Source: Phallusia mammillata
Lineage: Eukaryota
Direction: 5' to 3'
Length of the DNA: 64,000 bases
Assembly (NCBI GenBank): GCA_965637545.1
Contig: OZ281495.1
Coordinates: 22,072,001-22,136,000, forward strand
A program made the position numbers and the translations under genes. A model generated the notes under the pieces. It was not told the DNA's origin. It saw nothing but the letters and a program-made list of their open reading frames with translations, and made no database searches. Each line of letters opens with the position of its first letter. Within the stretch, counting starts at the first letter, position 1. Positions 4,743-55,743 of this stretch are shown one piece after another.

Positions 4743-7700
4743 GCAAACGATGTCAATTTGTGTCGATGTTGCTGCATAAATTAACGCAAAACTTGTTTAT
4801 GACGTAGCCAGCGACGCAGATACCCGGGGAGTGGGCGCCAGTGTCGTAGCCTATAGAGCGCAAGTAGTATTGGGTCACAAAGGCAACTGTTATTTAAATC
4901 GCCGCATAGTAGCAATTAGATTACATGTATATGGGGACGATGTGTACGTTTTTGCCAGTAACCTATATTACAAAAAAGATTAGGGGCGTAATGAGATAGT
5001 GAAGTAGTTTGAGCACAGAAGAGTCGTGACTCCAGAACGAAGAGTGTCTAGAGTAGACTCCGGAATGTAGAGTGTTTTATTGAACAAAACGCAAAACCTT
5101 ATAGGCCTATAGCGCAAAACACATGGTACGAAATTCAGAAGGAACAACTAAATCACTTTTGCAGGCGCAAGGGTGGAAACATAAGCTTCCTGACTCCGTG
5201 ACAACGGAAAATCGCGACGGCCTAATCCCCAACGCACAAACACGAAATTTCGGACACACAACAGTACGCTACGTTTAAATGACTTTGGTTAATTTTAGAA
5301 GTTTATGATTTTAAATCTAATGCTTTCGCATGTCAACCACTACATCCATTTGTAAACGAGTGTGCATTAGAAAACAGTTTAAAAAGGCTGAGTAAGATTA
5401 AAATCCTTTAAAATATTGTATGAATGAAATGGTTGTCAAGTGAAAACAAACCTGCTACTAACAAATCGGCTGAACTTGGGCCACACAATGCATTCAATGT
5501 CAATCAACCGTCCTAAAATGCTGTCCCTAAACAAATGCCTTCCGGAACCGTGGCTAACAACGCGACTAAATACTTTCGTGGCAAAAAAAAAACAGAACGT
5601 AAGTCAGTGACTTTTTACAACTCTTTTTGGTGTAAGTTACAACTTGTAACATAGGCTACGCTTATGTTTTTCAAACAATGAATAGGACCAGCAGTTAACC
5701 ATATGCGAACAATTTAATAGATACCTCAATTAATTTCGGCAACAGCTTTATTATAGTAACTTACCTTGACAGTGCAGAAACTTGTTCAAGAGGCATGTTT
5801 GTAACTTGATGTTCGATAAAAGTTAACACTCAATTGAAAACACATTCTTATTGCAAAACAATAGTTAGGCTGTATTTTGACAATTATTTTGCAATGCACG
5901 TTTCAATCACATGTTTAAAAATCGTTAGTGTTTAAAAGCCTGTTTAGGCTTAAATATGTTCGATTGTTCATGATAAACAGTTTGCTCAATATACCTCTAC
6001 CTCACAACTTCCTTCGTTGTAACACCCAAAACTTCGGTTTGAAATGTAGACTAAAGGTAACACCAGCACACAACGCTATGTATGTACACAAGCAGGTACA
6101 TTATCAACTCTAAATAACCAAATATAAGTTACCTTACAAAACATAAATGACTAATCCATGCTAAACATACTATACAAGATCGTTACAGGGCAATGATACA
6201 TGCTTCTCCAATTAGCTGTCTGTTTCTAAGTATATTTAGCTGCAAAATTTCTGTTTTTCATTGACTTCGGTTGGCTAGAGCCTACTGTGTGCGTTGTCTT
6301 TTTCTCTTGCAGGGCTTCCTGAGTGGATGTGCAAACGATGTCAATTTGTGTCGATGTTGCTGACCGAGTTTAAGCAAACACTTCTTGCATGTTTTTATCC
6401 AATGGCTCATTGGCATATAACCAGGGTTGCCATCGACATGGAACTCGAAATAAGGACACACGAACAACTGGAATTTCATGTCAAGGAAAACAAACGTTTT
6501 TGAACAAATCTTTGCATATATACGAGCCTTGACATATCACATGTAATATTTCTTTTTGCCAGGAACAATCTGTTCCAACTACTTGTTCGTAGAAAACAGT
6601 TAGTGCATCTTACGACAGCCCAGCTGCCCAGGTCTAGATTTACTTTTAGCAGGGATTTGACCTGTAATTGTTAAAAGTAAGACAAACTAAGGACTCAAGT
6701 CAAAAACAAGGACAGTTCTTAGAAATAAGGACAAAAACTTTTTCTAAGACATTGTCCTTCAAAACAAGGACAAATCTTAGAAATAAGGACAGTATGACAA
6801 CCCTGCATAGAACACTTCTAGTGTACGTTTGTGACGTAACAAAATGCGTTGTTTGATTTTTCAGAAAGGTGTGTCTGTTCAAACTAGGCAGTCGTACTGT
6901 ACAGTAGTACATAGTTACTACAAAACTGTATGTGCATAAATTAACGCAAAACTTGTTTATGACGTAGCCAGCGACGCAGATACCCGGGGAGTGGGCGCCA
7001 GTGTCGTAGCCTATAGAGCGCAAGTAGTATTGGGTCACAAAGGCAACTGTTATTTAAATCGCCGCATAGTAGCAATTAGATTACATGTATATGGGGACGA
7101 TGTGTACGTTTTTGCCAGTAACCTATATTACAAAAAAGATTAGGGGCGTAATGAGATAGTGAAGTAGTTTGAGCACAGAAGAGTCGTGACTCCAGAACGA
7201 AGAGTGTCTAGAGTAGACTCCGGAATGTAGAGTGTTTTATTGAACAAAACGCAAAACCTTATAGGCCTATAGCGCAAAACACATGGTACGAAATTCAGAA
7301 GGAACAACTAAATCACTTTTGCAGGCGCAAGGGTGGAAACATAAGCTTCCTGACTCCGTGACAACGGAAAATCGCGACGGCCTAATCCCCAACGCACAAA
7401 CACGAAATTTCGGACACACAACAGTACGCTACGTTTAAATGACTTTGGTTAATTTTAGAAGTTTATGATTTTAAATCTAATGCTTTCGCATGTCAACCAC
7501 TACATCCATTTGTAAACGAGTGTGCATTAGAAAACAAGTGAAAACAAACCTGCTACTAACAAATCGGCTGAACTTGGGCCACACAATGCATTCAATGTCA
7601 ATCAACCGTCCTAAAATGCTGTCCCTAAACAAATGCCTTCCGGAACCGTGGCTAACAACGCGACTAAATACTTTCGTGGCAAAAAAAAAACAGAACGTAA

Positions 7701-47515: not shown

Positions 47516-48232
47516 TGTAACGACCGCTAGGTGCGCAGCCTGGCCCTGCGCCGTTCGTCACACTAGATAACCCTTTTTGTAAAACGCGCCCGTCCTACAG
47601 CCTGTCCTCCAAGACGACCCACTCTTGCATTTGCAACGAATGTTCTTTTTTGGCGATAAAAGGCAACGCTGACGAATAAACCAAGACGACAACGTCAATA
47701 GCAACGGCAACGGTTTTTCTGTAACCACAAATAACATACATAAGCCAGACGTACACATTATGACGTCATAGCGACCATCAAACAATAAGCAGTTTTAACA
47801 GTACACACAAGGTTTTAAACTAAATCTACATTAATCGGTCATATTTTACATTAGATTACTTCCAAATTACTCATAACAAGTCAAGTTACTGTTAAAATAC
47901 ACATTAACACAAGTTAAACACAAATCAAGCAAAAACATAAAACATACCAACTGTTGGGTAACCAGGGCTTTACTAGCACGCGGCTAGAGGTTCCACAACT
48001 GACAATTCAGCATTTTAGCTATTGCTCTTAACATTTACAGTTTCACTTATTCAAATAGAATCAAGAAATTAGGATAAATTCACTTAAATTGACTGCAAAC
48101 CTAGCAACTAACGCAGCTCACAAAAACGTGGCGTTCAAAGCACATGCTCTGTCGCGGATGAATATTTCAATACGTCACGAATAAAGGAGAACTTAAATCA
48201 GCGAAGCGGAACAATTAATTCTCGCTGTAACA
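47516..48232 (-). repeat. 3' LTR (717 bp)
   Basis: Direct repeat of 54323-54999, preceded on the sense strand by GGGGGGTA. Confidence 0.97.
48046..48061 (-). other. Exact ascidian spliced-leader exon ATTCTATTTGAATAAG inside the 3' LTR
   Basis: The + strand reads cttattcaaatagaat, the reverse complement of the 16-nt Ciona SL (SL sequence from established knowledge). Confidence 0.85.
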
Positions 48233-48244
48233 TACCCCCCGACG
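48233..48244 (-). promoter_or_regulatory. Polypurine tract
   Basis: The sense strand reads cgtcGGGGGGTA immediately before the TGTTACA start of the 3' LTR. Confidence 0.7.
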
Positions 48245-48320: not shown

Positions 48321-51300
48321 TTAAGCCTTCATAATCAAACACAATTTCGCGATCGGTCGTTTGAACGACCCAACGTGCGTTTTAACCAAAGCACTTCGCA
48401 CAAACCCGGACTTATCCGGGTACGTTTCCACGATTCTTCCGGTGAGCCATTTTCCTCGTGGTGCCGAGTTGTCGACCAACAGGACCAGATCACCAGCGTC
48501 GAGGTTCTCTTCGGGAAATTGCCATTTCTGACGCGTCTGTAGCGTCAGCAGGTACTCATTTGTCCAACGGACCCAAAACTGGTCGGCCAAGTACTGGACC
48601 TGGCGCCAGTGCCGTCGAACGTAGTTGTCTTCCTTCACAAATACTCCGGGTGGCGAGATATCATGTCGCCCAATCAAAAGCAGGTGGTTCGGTGTCAGAG
48701 GCTCTCTGTCGGCAGGATCAAGACTGATGGGAGTCAAGGGCCTCGAGTTTAGGATGAACTCGACCTCAACAAGCAGCGTACTCAGCGTCTCGTCAGAAGG
48801 CACTTGCTGTCCCAACAATACATTCAAAATCTTGCGCACCGAACGAATTAGACGTTCCCAGACGCCACCCATGTGACTGGCGGCAGGTGGGTTAAATGAC
48901 CAGTCAACGCCCCACTGGCGAAGACGTTCTTCGATGTGAGTTTGATTCCATTTTTCAAGAGACTCGCGCAGTATGCGCTCAGCGCCGACGAAGTTCGTTC
49001 CATTATCACTGAAAATGCGCCTGGGCTTTCCCCGTCTTCCAATAAACCTTCGGAAAGCTTCAATAAACGAGTCAGTAGAAAGCGAGTGCGCTACTTCCAA
49101 ATGCACAGCACGCACGGTCATACACGTGAAGATGCAACCGTATCGTTTGACTTCGCTTCTTCCTTGTTTCACGAGTATGGGTCCAAAGTAATCCACACCC
49201 ACAGACGAAAACGGTGGCTCACCCGGAGTCGTGCGCTCAACAGGTAAGTCGGCCATCATTTGTTTCGAGACTGAAGCATTTCTTCTTCGACAGAACACAC
49301 AGTTTCCAAGGATTCTTCTTACCGCTACACCACCTCGCACAATCCAATATCTCTGACGAACAATTGCCCAAGTGTGCGACATTCCGGAATGGCAAACATT
49401 AGCGTGTGTCTCGCGAATAATCAAAGTAGTAATGTGATGTGCGTTTGGGAGAATCATCGGGTGCTTAATTTCAAAGGGAATCGGTGCCCTTTCCAGGCGG
49501 CCACCCACTCGCAACACACCACCAATCAAAACAGGATTGAGTCTATGAAGAGCTTTTGATGGCAGTTTCTTCATGACTTTCTTCTTCCCGGTGCGATCTA
49601 AGTCTTCGCACTTGCACAATGCCTCTATTTCGTCAGAAAACTGTCTTCCTTGAACATATTTGACAATCGCTAGCTCAGCACTTTCAAGATCAGCGACAGT
49701 CAGTCTTTTGGATAGGTGTTGGTTCTTCTTAGAACGCAGATAGTCAACGAATCGCTGGAGCCAAGCAACTGCCTTCTTTAATTTCTTCCATGAAGAATAG
49801 CGACAAATTAAATCATCAAACAAACACTGCTCCTCTGCAACATGCACAGCCAACATTTTCTTCGGTTTCATGTTTAAATATTCCTCGGGAACATCTTTGG
49901 TATTCACGGGATTCGTAGGCCAGTGACGTTCATCGCTGCCTAAAAACGAAGGTCCGGTGAACCAACGCTTGTTTTGGAGAAAAGCCTTTACAGTACACCC
50001 ACGAGATGCGTCATCAGCTGGGTTTAATGCAGTAGGAACATGCTTCCACTGCGACGCGTCGGATCCTTCCTCAATTTTCGCCAGTCGGTTGGCGAAAAAG
50101 GTACAAAACCGTTTATTTACGTTGTAAATGGATTGGAGAACTGCAGTTGAATCAGTCCAAAACACGGATCGTCCGATATCCAAGTCAAGTTCCTGCCTTA
50201 AAACTTGGTCCATCTTGACAGCAAGAGTAGCTGCGGTCAATTCCAATCTGGGAATAGACACCATCTTCAAAGGCGCAAGACGGGCCTTTCCAGTAACAAA
50301 AGAACAATGCACATTGCCTTGTTCATCCATTGTTCGCAAGTATGCGACTGTTCCGTATCCACAGGAAGACGCATCTGCGAAATGATGCAGCTCGTGCGTC
50401 TTGACTTCAAGTCCAGTGGTCTGAAAACACCTTTTAATCTTAATTTCTGATAGACCTGGAAGCTCAGAAATCCATGCGTTCCATCTCTTTTCTATATCCG
50501 GTGGAACTTCCTGATCCCAGCCATAATTTTCTTTGCAAAGCTCCTGCAAAAGCTTTCGCGCATGTAATATTACAGGCGCAACGAAACCCAGGGGATCGAA
50601 CAAGGAGCTGACCACGGAAAGTATTCCTCTCCTCGTTACAGGCTTCTTTTTGACCTTTACGTCAAATTCAAACACGTCGGAGCGAAAATTCCACAACACT
50701 CCAAGCACACGTTCCATGTGCTTTACATCAACATTTAATATAATGGACTGTACAGATCTATCTTCGGTTGGGACTGACGACAACACACGCTCGCTGTTGC
50801 TCACCCATTTTCTGAGCCGAAATCCTCCGAGCTGCAACAATTCACGCAACTCTCCAGCCAATTTGATTGCATCGTCTTCTTTCCTTACGGACTTCAAACA
50901 ATCGTCCACGTAGAAGTTTTGTTTCACTGTCGAAACCGCTTCAGAACTGAATTTCGCCTTGTTATCTTCAGCAGTTTTCTGCAAACAGTACCCAGCACAG
51001 CAAGGAGACGAGGCTGCACCAAATATGTGCACCAGCATCTGGTAATCAACGGGTTCACGCGACAAATCGCCTTCAGGCCACCAAACGAATCTTAGTGCAG
51101 ATGCATCGATCGGATCAACCTTTACCTGGTGAAACATCGCTTCTACATCGGCGACAAAAGCAACTGGTTCCTGGCGAAATCGGACAAGCGTCCCAAAAAG
51201 ACTGTTGAGCAAATCTGGGCCTTGCAAAAGCTGGTCATTCAGCGAAATATTATGATATCTGGCGGCGCAGTCAAAGACGACCCTCACCTTTCCAGGTTTC

Positions 51301-54062
51301 TGCGGGTGTACAACCGGGTGATGCGGCAGGTACCAAACAGCGCCATCTTCCGGCTCCTTGTCGTCGCACTTCAAACGTCTGGCATATCCCTCGTTCAAGT
51401 ACGTATCCAACGTTTGCTTGTACTTCTCATACAGCTGCGAATCAGTTTCCAATCGCCGTTTCAAGTATGACAAACGCTTCATTGCCATAGCACGGTTATT
51501 TGGCAAGTTTGGAGCACCTGGTCTCCATGGCATTCGCAGTTGGTAGTGTCCGTCATGACACTTCACTGAGCTTTCCATCTGTTTCAATGCGTACCTGTCT
51601 TCTTTCGACAGTGTCGTTCCGGGTGACAACGCGGTTTGGCCAAAGTCGCTTTCCCACATGCATTTTATCTGTTGGTGCAACGTTTCGTCCTGCGAGGTTA
51701 CAAAATTCACCCGTATCTGTGAACTTCTTGAACCATTACTACGACATGGACCTACAAGCGACCAACCGAGCATAGAACGCACGGCACTTGGCTCCTTTCT
51801 TCCGCCTCTTCGTTCATCATTTATCCAGAACACCTCGGGAACGTTTGCTCCAATCAGCAACATGACTTCCCCAAGGGGCAAGACAGGAAACTCTAAATTA
51901 CGCAAGTGAGGCCATCGCCAAAGCGACCCTTCCGGTATTCTGTTTGGGGAGACTGGCAAACTGTCCACGCTCAAAACGTCGTTTAATCGTACGGATTGCT
52001 TCCCGTCGAGCGACGCCACCGTTAAATCGACGGCCAAACCCTCTCTTCTCTGTGACCTATCACTGACAGTGGTCAAGGAGTACGTTGTCTTTCTCCCCCC
52101 GACGTCCAGCTGCTTGATCAGTCGTTTGTCACACAAGGTTGTAGTCGATCCTTGGTCCAAAAAGGCGTAAGTTTCCAGCTTTCTGCCATTACTGGCTGTA
52201 ACCTTTACCGGCACTATGTTAAGGTACACACTCTCTGCATGAGTGCTCATGCAAGTCCAGGTGACAGTTGCATTTGATGATGTCGGTTTCTCTTCTGAGG
52301 CCTGCGTAGACGCTTCGCGTACGGGTGCAGTTGAAGAAGTCTTCCATTCTGTCCAGTGCAGAAGGTTGTGATGCTTTCCACGGCATCCGCCGATGGTGCA
52401 AGAGCTTGGTAAACTACATGTTCTTGCTATATGACCCTTTACGAAACAATTGTCACACAGCCGAACTTGACGCAGAAACTTTCTTCGCTCTACAAAGGTC
52501 TTCCGTTTGAACACGTCGCAATTGCCAAGGTCGTGCGATTTACTGCACAAAGGACATCCCTGCTTCTGAGGACTTCTAGGTTCAGCCTTACGCTCGTTTC
52601 CCGGAGCAACCGATGTCGCATGAGTCGATGCTCTTGTCCTCGTCGTAGGAGATTTGCTGCGCCTTTTCTGCGTATCTCTGTCCTTCCGAGGACCCAACAC
52701 TCGACCAAACATCGTGGTTCCAATGTACGCTTCTTTCTTAACGAATTCAACAAGGTGACAGAAACGAGGCTCTTCCCCATTCCTTTCAATTTTAGCAGCA
52801 TGTCTTCTCCATTGACTTTGCAGTGCAAACGGCAATCGCTTTATTATATTCAGCATATTTTCAAAATTGTTGATGTCTGCGAAGTATCCCAGATGAGTCA
52901 GGGTCACCAGACACTCTTCTAATGCCTGTGCTAGATCTATCAGTCCGTCAGTATCATCGGATTTCAGATAAGGCCAGTGACTTAGCTTATCCACGTACGC
53001 ACGTGCGACTATGATAGGACGTCCATACCGCTTGAATAACAAATCGCGAGCCCTTCGGTAACCTTCCGGAGGGTCAAGGCCAATGCAAAAGGCAATCATT
53101 GCATGTGCTTCTTTTCGACAGTATTGGATCAGATAATTAAGCTTCACACTGTCGCTGTCTACCCGCCGACCAATATTTTCGTCAAAGCTTATCATGAAAC
53201 GCGTGTACATTAGCGGATCACCATCAAAATACAATAGCTGTGGCCTGGGAAGCTCCATCCCTGCCTTTAAGACTGCAGCAACACGACACAGGTCACTCAC
53301 CTCCGGCTCATGATTCAGTGCTTCCGTTTTTGGTTTAGGTTCGCAACGCGAGGAGGACGGAATGTCCGTTACCTGCGCTTCTGAACTGCTTCTGTTAATA
53401 ATGCTGGAGTCTGATGCTTGCTTTTCCTCTTTTACTACTTCGGGTTTGGTCTCAGGTGAGAAGAGGACTGGTAATTCAACTTGCTTCTCTGGCTGAAATC
53501 CAGCGAAACATGATCCCGATGAAGACGTTCTTTCCCATAACTCAGCTGCCACTGTGGCAGCCTTTATTTTATGGTCAGCTTCCAGAAGTTTTAACTGATT
53601 TTCTGTTTCCATCCTTTTTTGCAGAAACTCCTTTTCCAGCAGCGCGACTTCCTTATTTACCAGCGCCTCAGTACGTCTGCAACTCGACCTCGAACTTGTA
53701 TGTGAACCAATTCTACTTCTAGAACCAAAATCGCTGACAGACGGTTCCTTGCTCGAGTGTTCAGGCGGTTTGGAACGCCTTACTTCCTCTAACCATTCTT
53801 CTGTGCGCGCATCAAATTCTTGCTTGCCACTTCGCAAACTTGAGAGCGCAGCATTAATTTTTCTTCTATCTTTTTTCTTTTTTACAAAATCCAGTCGTGT
53901 TGTGTGTTTGCCAACACATTCGTCGTACAAAACATCAATGGATGAAGTCTTCTCTTTTAACTGTTGCACATTCGAGGAATCAATCATAATTTCCTCTGCA
54001 TCTTGATATGCCAAGTTCAGTCGTTTAACTAAATTGTCAAGAGTGTGTTGAGATTCAACCAT
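48321..54062 (-). CDS. BEL/Pao Gag-Pol polyprotein (~1913 aa from the ATG at 54062)
   Basis: Gag with three zinc knuckles (CPLCSKSHDLGNC, CDNCFVKGHIARTC, CTIGGCRGKHH); protease AFLDQGST; RT YVDD; RNase H HHFADAS / WTDS; integrase H..H..C..C with GVDYFGP, SDNGTNF and GGVWERL; C-terminal GRIVETYPDKSGFVR typical of BEL/Pao. Confidence 0.97.
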   Translation of the reverse strand: MVESQHTLDNLVKRLNLAYQDAEEIMIDSSNVQQLKEKTSSIDVLYDECVGKHTTRLDFVKKKKDRRKINAALSSLRSGKQEFDARTEEWLEEVRRSKPPEHSSKEPSVSDFGSRSRIGSHTSSRSSCRRTEALVNKEVALLEKEFLQKRMETENQLKLLEADHKIKAATVAAELWERTSSSGSCFAGFQPEKQVELPVLFSPETKPEVVKEEKQASDSSIINRSSSEAQVTDIPSSSRCEPKPKTEALNHEPEVSDLCRVAAVLKAGMELPRPQLLYFDGDPLMYTRFMISFDENIGRRVDSDSVKLNYLIQYCRKEAHAMIAFCIGLDPPEGYRRARDLLFKRYGRPIIVARAYVDKLSHWPYLKSDDTDGLIDLAQALEECLVTLTHLGYFADINNFENMLNIIKRLPFALQSQWRRHAAKIERNGEEPRFCHLVEFVKKEAYIGTTMFGRVLGPRKDRDTQKRRSKSPTTRTRASTHATSVAPGNERKAEPRSPQKQGCPLCSKSHDLGNCDVFKRKTFVERRKFLRQVRLCDNCFVKGHIARTCSLPSSCTIGGCRGKHHNLLHWTEWKTSSTAPVREASTQASEEKPTSSNATVTWTCMSTHAESVYLNIVPVKVTASNGRKLETYAFLDQGSTTTLCDKRLIKQLDVGGRKTTYSLTTVSDRSQRREGLAVDLTVASLDGKQSVRLNDVLSVDSLPVSPNRIPEGSLWRWPHLRNLEFPVLPLGEVMLLIGANVPEVFWINDERRGGRKEPSAVRSMLGWSLVGPCRSNGSRSSQIRVNFVTSQDETLHQQIKCMWESDFGQTALSPGTTLSKEDRYALKQMESSVKCHDGHYQLRMPWRPGAPNLPNNRAMAMKRLSYLKRRLETDSQLYEKYKQTLDTYLNEGYARRLKCDDKEPEDGAVWYLPHHPVVHPQKPGKVRVVFDCAARYHNISLNDQLLQGPDLLNSLFGTLVRFRQEPVAFVADVEAMFHQVKVDPIDASALRFVWWPEGDLSREPVDYQMLVHIFGAASSPCCAGYCLQKTAEDNKAKFSSEAVSTVKQNFYVDDCLKSVRKEDDAIKLAGELRELLQLGGFRLRKWVSNSERVLSSVPTEDRSVQSIILNVDVKHMERVLGVLWNFRSDVFEFDVKVKKKPVTRRGILSVVSSLFDPLGFVAPVILHARKLLQELCKENYGWDQEVPPDIEKRWNAWISELPGLSEIKIKRCFQTTGLEVKTHELHHFADASSCGYGTVAYLRTMDEQGNVHCSFVTGKARLAPLKMVSIPRLELTAATLAVKMDQVLRQELDLDIGRSVFWTDSTAVLQSIYNVNKRFCTFFANRLAKIEEGSDASQWKHVPTALNPADDASRGCTVKAFLQNKRWFTGPSFLGSDERHWPTNPVNTKDVPEEYLNMKPKKMLAVHVAEEQCLFDDLICRYSSWKKLKKAVAWLQRFVDYLRSKKNQHLSKRLTVADLESAELAIVKYVQGRQFSDEIEALCKCEDLDRTGKKKVMKKLPSKALHRLNPVLIGGVLRVGGRLERAPIPFEIKHPMILPNAHHITTLIIRETHANVCHSGMSHTWAIVRQRYWIVRGGVAVRRILGNCVFCRRRNASVSKQMMADLPVERTTPGEPPFSSVGVDYFGPILVKQGRSEVKRYGCIFTCMTVRAVHLEVAHSLSTDSFIEAFRRFIGRRGKPRRIFSDNGTNFVGAERILRESLEKWNQTHIEERLRQWGVDWSFNPPAASHMGGVWERLIRSVRKILNVLLGQQVPSDETLSTLLVEVEFILNSRPLTPISLDPADREPLTPNHLLLIGRHDISPPGVFVKEDNYVRRHWRQVQYLADQFWVRWTNEYLLTLQTRQKWQFPEENLDAGDLVLLVDNSAPRGKWLTGRIVETYPDKSGFVRSALVKTHVGSFKRPIAKLCLIMKA

Positions 54063-54084
54063 CTTGATAGCTCTACCAACGATG

Positions 54085-54322
54085 TTAGAAAGTTCGAAGT
54101 TGAAAACCTTTATTTTCAACGAGTTGAAAAACTTTATTTTTCAGAGGCTTCCGTAGATTAAACACTTTGTTTTCAATCAGTTGAAAAACTTTATTTTTCA
54201 TCAGTTTTTCCGTAAGTTGAAAAACTTTATTTTTCAACGATTTCCGTAGGTTGAACACTTTGTGTTCCAAAGTTGAAAAACTTGATTTTTCAACAGTTTT
54301 TCCGTAAGTTGAAAAACTTTAA
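54085..54322 (-). repeat. Array of ~8 GTTGAAAAACTT-containing, self-complementary units in the retrotransposon leader
   Basis: Units such as gttgaaaaa-cttta-tttttcaac form 9-bp hairpins. The array abuts the 5' LTR. Confidence 0.85.
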
Positions 54323-54999
54323 TGTAACGACCGCTAGGTGCGCAGCCTGGCCCTGCGCCGTTCGTCACACTAAAGTTTTTTTTTTTTTTTTTTTTTTTTG
54401 CAACGAATGTTCTTTTTTGGCGATAAAAGGCAACGCTGACGAATAAACCAAGACGACAACGTCAATAGCAACGGCAACGGTTTTTCTGTGACCACAAATA
54501 ACATACATAAGCCAGACGTACACATTATGACGTCATAGCGACCATCAAACAATAAGCAGTTTTAACAGTACACACAAGGTTTTAAACTAAATCTACATTA
54601 ATCGGTCATATTTTACATTAGATTACTTCCAAATTACTCATAACAAGTCAAGTTACTGTTAAAATACACATTAACACAAGTTAAACACAAATCAAGCAAA
54701 AACATAAAACATACCAACTGTTGGGTAACCAGGGCTTTACTAGCACGCGGCTAGAGGTTCCACAACTGACAATTCAGCATTTTAGCTATTGCTCTTAACA
54801 TTTACAGTTTCACTTATTCAAATAGAATCAAGAAATTAGGATAAATTCACTTAAATTGACTGCAAACCTAGCAACTAACGCAGCTCACAAAAACGTGGCG
54901 TTCAAAGCACATGCTCTGTCGCGGATGAATATTTCAATACGTCACGAATAAAGGAGAACTTAAATCAGCGAAGCGGAACAATTAATTCTCGCTGTAACA
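54323..54999 (-). repeat. 5' LTR (677 bp)
   Basis: By eye it is identical to the 3' LTR except for one substitution (ctgtgacc vs ctgtaacc) and a 64-bp segment replaced by aag plus a T run. Confidence 0.97.
54813..54828 (-). other. Exact ascidian spliced-leader exon inside the 5' LTR (LTR nt 172-187)
   Basis: The + strand reads cttattcaaatagaat. Confidence 0.85.
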
Positions 55000-55743
55000 C
55001 TATGGTCAATGTGTAGACTATGGTAAAGCAACAATGAAAATGAATTTTCAAACTTTCTGCATTATTTTCTTTGTGTTTGGCCAACAGTGAATTGCAAAAT
55101 AGATTACATGTGGTGGTATCCCTTCAGCATCCCTGGAGAACAAATGTTCTTATTTGCAAAATGAAAGACATTGTGTTATCTTTTACAAGTTTGGTTCTGC
55201 TGTGTTTTATACTGGAATTTAAAATTGTGTATGACGTTTTTACCAACTATGTACTGCATTTTAATTTGCTGCAAAATAAAAATAATGCAACAGTTTTTTT
55301 TTTATGTAACATTGCTCTACAAGTTAAAAGTGAGCAGTAAAAAGCTCAAACAAGCTATAGCAAATATCAACATTTTATGCAGCCAAAAAATTTTACTGGA
55401 TTAACTCCACATTGGGTATAAGATTAGAAATTTGGATTGTAGCTAGGAACCAACATTGGCCCCAATTAAAATAATATTTTGTATAATGTCAAACACTCAA
55501 AACCCTAACTATTTAACTTTAATGTCGGACAGCGACCCTCTTTTTCATTTATCCTTGCATATTTACATATAAATGCTAAGATTTTATTTAAAAAGATCAC
55601 TAAAAATATTCAAACAGACAGCAAAAAAGGTTTATACCGCATCATTTACCCTGTAACAAGTAGCAAATAGCCTAAACAAGTAATGCCGGAGTGTGGTTAT
55701 GACGTCATAAGCGCGTTTCATTTTGATTGTTATTTTTGTATAT

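Follow-up and report, generated by a model that had tools for sequence, protein, structure and literature searches.

The two long terminal repeats (LTRs) of a BEL/Pao retrotransposon in the ascidian Phallusia mammillata carry the exact spliced leader (SL) of the host, at the place where sister copies of the same family have, by sequence, a 3' splice acceptor. The element lies on the minus strand of a 64,000-nt stretch of contig OZ281495.1 (assembly GCA_965637545.1, positions 22,072,001 to 22,136,000), which we call the window and in which positions are counted below unless another contig is named. Most probably, the leader is a fossil of an element RNA that was SL-trans-spliced and then reverse-transcribed, the leader reaching both LTRs by way of minus-strand strong-stop DNA.

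Leader and splice acceptor at one site of the LTR

The 16-mer ATTCTATTTGAATAAG is matched exactly at nt 172-187 of each LTR, at 54813-54828 in the 5' LTR and at 48046-48061 in the 3' LTR (both on the minus strand), and even with up to two mismatches allowed the window has no further match (0.14 expected from shuffles). A first-pass annotation of the window had reported both copies, and their sense orientation, from the letters alone, and pattern search together with direct reading confirmed them. In both LTRs the leader runs in the coding orientation of the element and is followed by TGAAACTG; a GT donor, a stem-loop, an Sm-type site and a tandem array, the features of an SL RNA gene, were each looked for at the LTR site and are absent. 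Because the SL RNA genes of the host read SL|GTAAGC and the LTRs read SL|TGAAACTG, the leader in the LTRs looks like the mature, already spliced form and not like an SL RNA gene, and on this point, too, the earlier annotation was right.

What distinguishes the window copy becomes clear from its relatives. The genome holds at least 40 close relatives of the window LTR, mostly arranged as pairs 6.7-6.8 kb apart, and all 28 other LTRs that were fetched (95-98% identity) lack the leader and read TTTCTTG-TGACTATTTTGTTTATAG-TGAAACTG or close variants of it (for example, copies L005-L007 have A in place of T within AGCTAAAATG). The site in these sister copies consists of a pyrimidine tract and AG, TTTTGTTTATAG|TGAAACTG, and is, judged by its sequence, a 3' splice acceptor. 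A whole-genome pattern anchored on TGAAACTGTAAAT returned 92 LTRs of the family, the window pair included, of which 88 are without the leader and show a pyrimidine tract that ends with AG, CG or AA (AG is kept in 84 of the 88). The leader type is limited to the remaining four LTRs at three loci, namely the window pair, L031 (C2:19393408) and L032 (C4:15854425). In the window copy, the 16-nt leader stands for the 18-nt acceptor region TGACTATTTTGTTTATAG and is joined to the downstream LTR exactly at the acceptor AG; across the whole genome, SL followed by TGAAACTG is found without mismatch only in the two LTRs of the window element. Two other near matches to this combination that were fetched (L107, L108), and also L033, turned out to be unrelated sequences. 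The leader is thus not a family-wide part of the LTR, as had been supposed at first, and related LTRs, inspected for neutral decay of the motif, have an acceptor there instead.

The leader state is derived. In a tree of 48 LTRs, built after removal of the site columns, the window LTR matches an acceptor-type copy (L004) at all 681 columns, a starred clade (98/95) of young acceptor-type copies encloses it, and every deeper lineage is acceptor-type as well. Mapping the leader on this tree needs three changes, and the starred branches force at least two of them. Approximately unbiased (AU) tests reject a single clade of the three leader-bearing LTRs (p = 0.003) as well as a clade of the window LTR with L032 (p = 0.006), which sits in another deep clade; a clade of the window LTR with L031 is not rejected (p = 0.40), and their independence is read solely from a differing joint and an 8-nt indel. 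The upstream joint of L031, CCTAATTTCT|ATTTGAATAAG, runs through a shared TTCT and differs from that of the window copy, and L031 shares with the L008 subgroup an 8-nt insert that is missing from the window copy. The joint of L032, CTTGTG|TTCTATTTGAATAAG, lies inside the shared TTCTATTT. On the evidence of the tree, the leader was therefore acquired at least twice, and the three different upstream joints probably mark three separate origins. The locus of L031 (G000:C2:19392400-19394400) is also rearranged: its nt 285 and nt 336 lie on either side of a second, inverted stretch of LTR nt 430-717.

The 16-mer is the host's own leader, as the first-pass annotation had assumed. It is identical to the main leader of Ciona found in full-length expressed sequence tags (PMC1488885), and the Phallusia genome encodes it in about 2,900 SL RNA genes. 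These form an array on contig 3, beginning at ~C3:11.108 Mb (sampled as L109, G000:C3:11108200-11109500), of tandem 553-bp units that each read CAAAACGGC-SL-GTAAGCATCA, with SL|GTAAGC as the exon/donor junction and, downstream, a short stem (ACUCC/GGAGU) and a U-run as Sm-type site. The SL unit of Ciona intestinalis is 264 bp long and thus differs from the 553-bp period found here. Two leader copies outside the main array lie 264 bp apart (G000:C1:31416171 and 31416435), one followed by GT and the other not, and may represent a small second type of SL unit. In all, ATTCTATTTGAATAAG occurs 3,860 times in the 240-Mb genome (the reversed-pattern control gave 0), and the ~900 copies outside the array are dispersed over many contexts. 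One source of many dispersed copies is a repeat family seen at 20 loci on contigs 1 and 2 (L087-L106), whose units continue after the leader with NNACTGAWGATGC...GGCGAAATATA, which resembles the core of a hammerhead ribozyme; the upstream flanks vary among the loci, and in some the unit forms an inverted repeat with its upstream flank. These repeats have the same host leader as the window element, but there it is the 5' terminus of a unit with variable flanks, whereas in the window copy it lies inside an LTR with a constant upstream flank.

Probable reverse transcription of a trans-spliced element RNA

In the reading that we favour, RNA of the element would sometimes be SL-trans-spliced by the host spliceosome at the acceptor ~190 nt into the LTR. 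Such an RNA would keep ~415 nt of R (the terminal repeat of the RNA), U5 (the unique 5' region), the primer binding site and the coding region, and could for this reason still be reverse-transcribed. Minus-strand strong-stop DNA would be copied as far as the RNA's 5' end and would terminate in the leader's complement; once transferred to the 3' R, it would pair through the ~415 nt downstream of the acceptor, with the 16-nt leader tail lying over the 18-nt acceptor region and ~11 positions matching. Extension from this imperfect end would copy the upstream part of the LTR, so that the leader would replace the acceptor in both LTRs, and integrase would insert the copy with a normal target duplication. 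The three upstream joints would fit three alignments of the leader tail. Within this reading, the leader is a by-product and not an adaptation. Trans-splicing at the LTR acceptor, the details of strand transfer and the position of the transcription start are what we infer from the arrangement of the DNA copies.

The first-pass annotation had also traced the leader to reverse transcription of an SL-trans-spliced RNA and to minus-strand transfer, and for the window copy this part is supported by the replacement at the AG and by the derived state. Two of its further proposals find no support: that the capture was ancestral, and that the leader marks the border between U3 (the unique 3' region) and R. 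The leader overwrites an acceptor, and in RNA from the element's own promoter the acceptor must lie downstream of the transcription start.

The element itself was delimited by direct reading and a repeat table. Its 5' LTR (54999..54323, 677 nt) and 3' LTR (48232..47516, 717 nt, of the usual family layout) both have TG...CA ends and are flanked by a 5-bp target-site duplication, CATAG, at 55004-55000 upstream and 47515-47511 downstream. Between them, on the same minus strand, lies an uninterrupted gag-pol frame of 1932 aa (48321..54119), in which an open reading frame and domain search recognised DUF1759, a reverse transcriptase, the Pao peptidase A17, an integrase and DUF5641. The Pfam matches are PF05380 (Peptidase_A17, 6.6e-47), PF18701 (DUF5641, 4.3e-29) and PF03564 (DUF1759, 6.2e-09), together with Integrase_H2C2, rve and RVT_1, the last two below Pfam's own cut-offs. 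With these domains, LTR ends and target duplication, the window element is a BEL/Pao LTR retrotransposon; an exact-protein look-up of the frame returned no record. A purine run, CGGGGGGTA (48233..48241), adjoins the 3' LTR on its upstream side and is a likely polypurine tract. The untranslated stretch between the 5' LTR and gag has imperfect tandem repeats of 57-93 nt (54095..54321), and no tRNA-type primer binding site was recognised directly after the 5' LTR. The two LTRs differ at one place: the 5' LTR alone has an A-run (54376..54399) of 24 nt followed by CTT, in place of 64 nt present in the 3' LTR (47566-47629) and in the other copies of the family that were examined; apart from this the two are identical. 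The A-run may correspond to the poly(A) site and so to the R/U5 border, for which the position near 54400 (near LTR nt 604) given by the first-pass annotation is plausible. Premature strand transfer, a plus strand primed on poly(A) and a simple deletion were considered as its cause, and none of them fits both the joint sequence and the absence of the run from the 3' LTR.

Assembled Logan contigs, whose RNA label is guessed, were compared over window positions 53300-55300. As assembled contigs lose rare variants and probably clip short 5' tips, they are weak evidence either way on the SL joint. RNA-like contigs cross the site uninterrupted from U3, and no assembled contig over this interval begins with the leader. 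In run X6, one contig skips a 229-nt GT..AG intron at LTR nt 286-514 (54486..54714, minus strand; 47719-47947 in the 3' LTR), with TTG|GTATGT as donor and CACAG|A as acceptor. Since the DNA-like run X13 has no joint that skips 54486-54714, the LTR has a spliced intron, and the stretch from the putative trans-splice acceptor to the intron donor (LTR nt 190-285) looks like an exon. A 1156-nt contig of run X6 (on 54306-54999) begins in the end of pol, continues over the purine tract and one LTR only, and stops after the first 17 nt of the untranslated stretch behind it; it could stem from tandem elements with an LTR in common, from a one-LTR circle or from no more than a walk in the assembly graph.

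Several points weigh against reverse transcription of a trans-spliced RNA as the origin of the leader. The joint SL|TGAAACTG is absent from the assembled contigs of three RNA-like runs, in which rare variants are dropped and only acceptor-type letters appear at the site. Reverse transcriptases extend a tail inefficiently when its last 3 nt are mispaired. The trans-spliced RNA could have come from read-through rather than from the LTR promoter, so that the acceptor may or may not lie in R. Finally, the model predicts identical LTRs, yet in the 5' LTR alone the A-run replaces 64 nt.

Leader sequence in other families and alternative origins

Dispersed pairs of leader copies 5-7 kb apart led to further leader-bearing elements. 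One of them, L035 (G000:C2:2526000-2534600), has identical LTRs of 705 nt and belongs to a second BEL/Pao family, whose pol is only 41% identical in amino acids to that of the window element. Most of its 30 relatives (L057-L086) read GATTCTATTTGAAACAG|AAAG or GATTCTGTTTGAAACAG, that is, the leader with two to three changes, ending in CAG, and two elements of this family have the exact leader in both LTRs. Over 681 columns, one of these (L065/L066) shows no difference from L073, a copy with the three-change form ATTCTGTTTGAAACAG, and the tree of this family forces two independent changes to the leader; as judged from these copies, the same process acts in the second family. Its acceptor is two edits from the leader, a resemblance reached by 0 of 5,709 background AG sites; the acceptor itself is clearly leader-derived, and the relic seems to serve again as an acceptor.

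A third family is Copia-like. In L036 (G000:C2:5624800-5631500; LTRs of 244 nt at 582-825 and 5616-5859), rve precedes RVT_2, and an exact leader, with AATAAA behind it, lies 15 nt before the point where the LTR ends and a primer binding site of tRNA-iMet type, TGGTAGCAGAGG, follows. Three related LTRs, only 74-86% identical overall, also have the exact leader, and three others lack it; in this family the leader could be part of R. A wider view builds on these families: LTR retrotransposons of this ascidian would use host SL trans-splicing as a regular step, and in some families the leader would be the R repeat, with the 5' R supplied fresh from host SL RNA in each round and the 3' R being the leader copy encoded in the LTR. 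This view would explain why BEL/Pao families only 41% identical have an acceptor at the same LTR position, why a leader relic serves as acceptor in the second family, and why an exact leader stands near the primer binding site in Copia-like LTRs that are otherwise 74-86% identical; we regard it as a tentative and rather unlikely extension.

As an alternative to trans-splicing, the leader could have entered as DNA or cDNA without any splicing, by gene conversion or recombination with one of the ~900 dispersed repeats or by a template switch onto SL RNA. The abundance and dispersal of the 16-mer and the readiness of reverse transcriptases to switch templates would favour such a route, but the 3' edge of the leader coincides with an acceptor AG in five events in two families, neither SL RNA gene flanks (GTAAGC...) nor those of another repeat accompany it, and both LTRs are changed, as expected for entry through the 5' end of an RNA. 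We consider this route improbable.

Marginally less probable is the proposal of the first-pass annotation that the leader was fixed at the U3/R border as a working component of the LTR, from which the element would transcribe an RNA beginning with a leader mimic, either to pose as host mRNA or to evade silencing. The leader is indeed exact, in sense orientation and without a donor in both LTRs, and leader-like sequence is present in all or many copies of other LTR families (the second BEL/Pao and the Copia-like family). In the window family, however, it is found at only three loci among ~90 LTRs, and its derived state sits at the tips of the tree. The 171 nt upstream are identical in sister copies, so that the start site should be unchanged and there is no reason to expect a new one, and the RNA-like contigs that cross the site from U3 do not suggest an RNA starting with the leader. 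Nothing in these data points to a role as a mimic either.

A leader ancestral to the family, with the acceptor of the other copies as a decayed or remodelled leader and the window copy keeping the old state, is less probable again. Some family variants do have TTCTATTT in common with the leader, and the second-family site, the leader with two to three changes, is a match that none of the 5,709 background AG sites attains. The window LTR nevertheless falls within a group of young acceptor-type copies, from which it does not differ outside the site, a single clade of leader-bearing copies is rejected, and all deep lineages have the acceptor. A capture that predated the diversification of the family, though conceivable, would not explain the window copy. 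The window-family acceptor was itself considered as an old leader relic and rejected, since its resemblance to the leader (five edits) is matched by 5% of AG sites and 10% of pyrimidine-rich ones and is not significant.

A chance match, for which only the AT-rich context speaks, can be dismissed, as the reversed-pattern control gave 0 against 3,860 real matches and all differences from the sisters fall within 18 nt, none of them in the other 681 columns. The earlier estimate of a chance hit (~3e-4) took random sequence as its null; with 3,860 occurrences, ~900 of them dispersed, the useful null is another route of spread.

Relation to known systems and significance

Reverse transcription of a trans-spliced RNA, as we propose it for the window element, unites two known kinds of observation, relict leaders and trans-spliced retroelement RNA. 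It also has a counterpart in retroviruses, where changes in the 5' R reach both LTRs through minus-strand strong-stop transfer and imperfect ends are tolerated; the retroviral cases concern engineered point changes in R, whereas the window copy would represent a natural, 16-nt foreign 5' end supplied by the host spliceosome. Retroelements physically tied to spliced-leader sequence are known as well, since CRE, SLACS, CZAR and NeSL are non-LTR elements that insert into SL RNA genes. Unlike these, the window element is an integrase-type LTR element, its site has no SL RNA gene and its target, CATAG, is unrelated.

Relict spliced leaders have been described in dinoflagellate retrogenes, which are recycled cDNAs (PMC5585692, PMC6050394). 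There, as in the window, a DNA-encoded leader marks passage through a trans-spliced RNA and reverse transcription, and dinoflagellate relics serve again as acceptors, as the relic of the second BEL/Pao family seems to do. In dinoflagellates, however, a host mRNA is copied and the leader heads the retrogene, whereas in the window the template would be the retrotransposon's own genome, and the leader overwrites an acceptor in both LTRs. The closest case of a trans-spliced retroelement RNA is Cer1, a Ty3/gypsy element of Caenorhabditis elegans whose RNA is SL1-trans-spliced at an internal acceptor (PMC3315495). Cer1 and the window family are both LTR retrotransposons with an acceptor for a spliced leader, used in Cer1 and putative here. 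In Cer1, SL1 was found only on the spliced 2.4-kb message, the 8-kb genomic RNA being without it, and no SL1-bearing LTR is described among its DNA copies (PMC3315495); the DNA copies of the window family, in contrast, imply reverse transcription and integration of a trans-spliced RNA in which primer binding site and coding region were intact. Our search of the literature found no description of a spliced leader inside LTRs.

If the favoured reading is correct, the window copy would record that the RNA of a chordate LTR retrotransposon can be a substrate for SL trans-splicing within the LTR, that an RNA trans-spliced in this way can still be reverse-transcribed and integrated, and that both LTRs can receive a 16-nt foreign 5' end by way of minus-strand transfer. 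The idea of a leader mimic is thereby corrected for the window family, and a built-in leader is a live possibility in other families of the same genome. Leader capture is repeated in two families and the acceptor persists untouched in sister copies, so that DNA by itself suffices to map trans-splice sites in repeats, and the rate of leader-capture events could be estimated from genome data.
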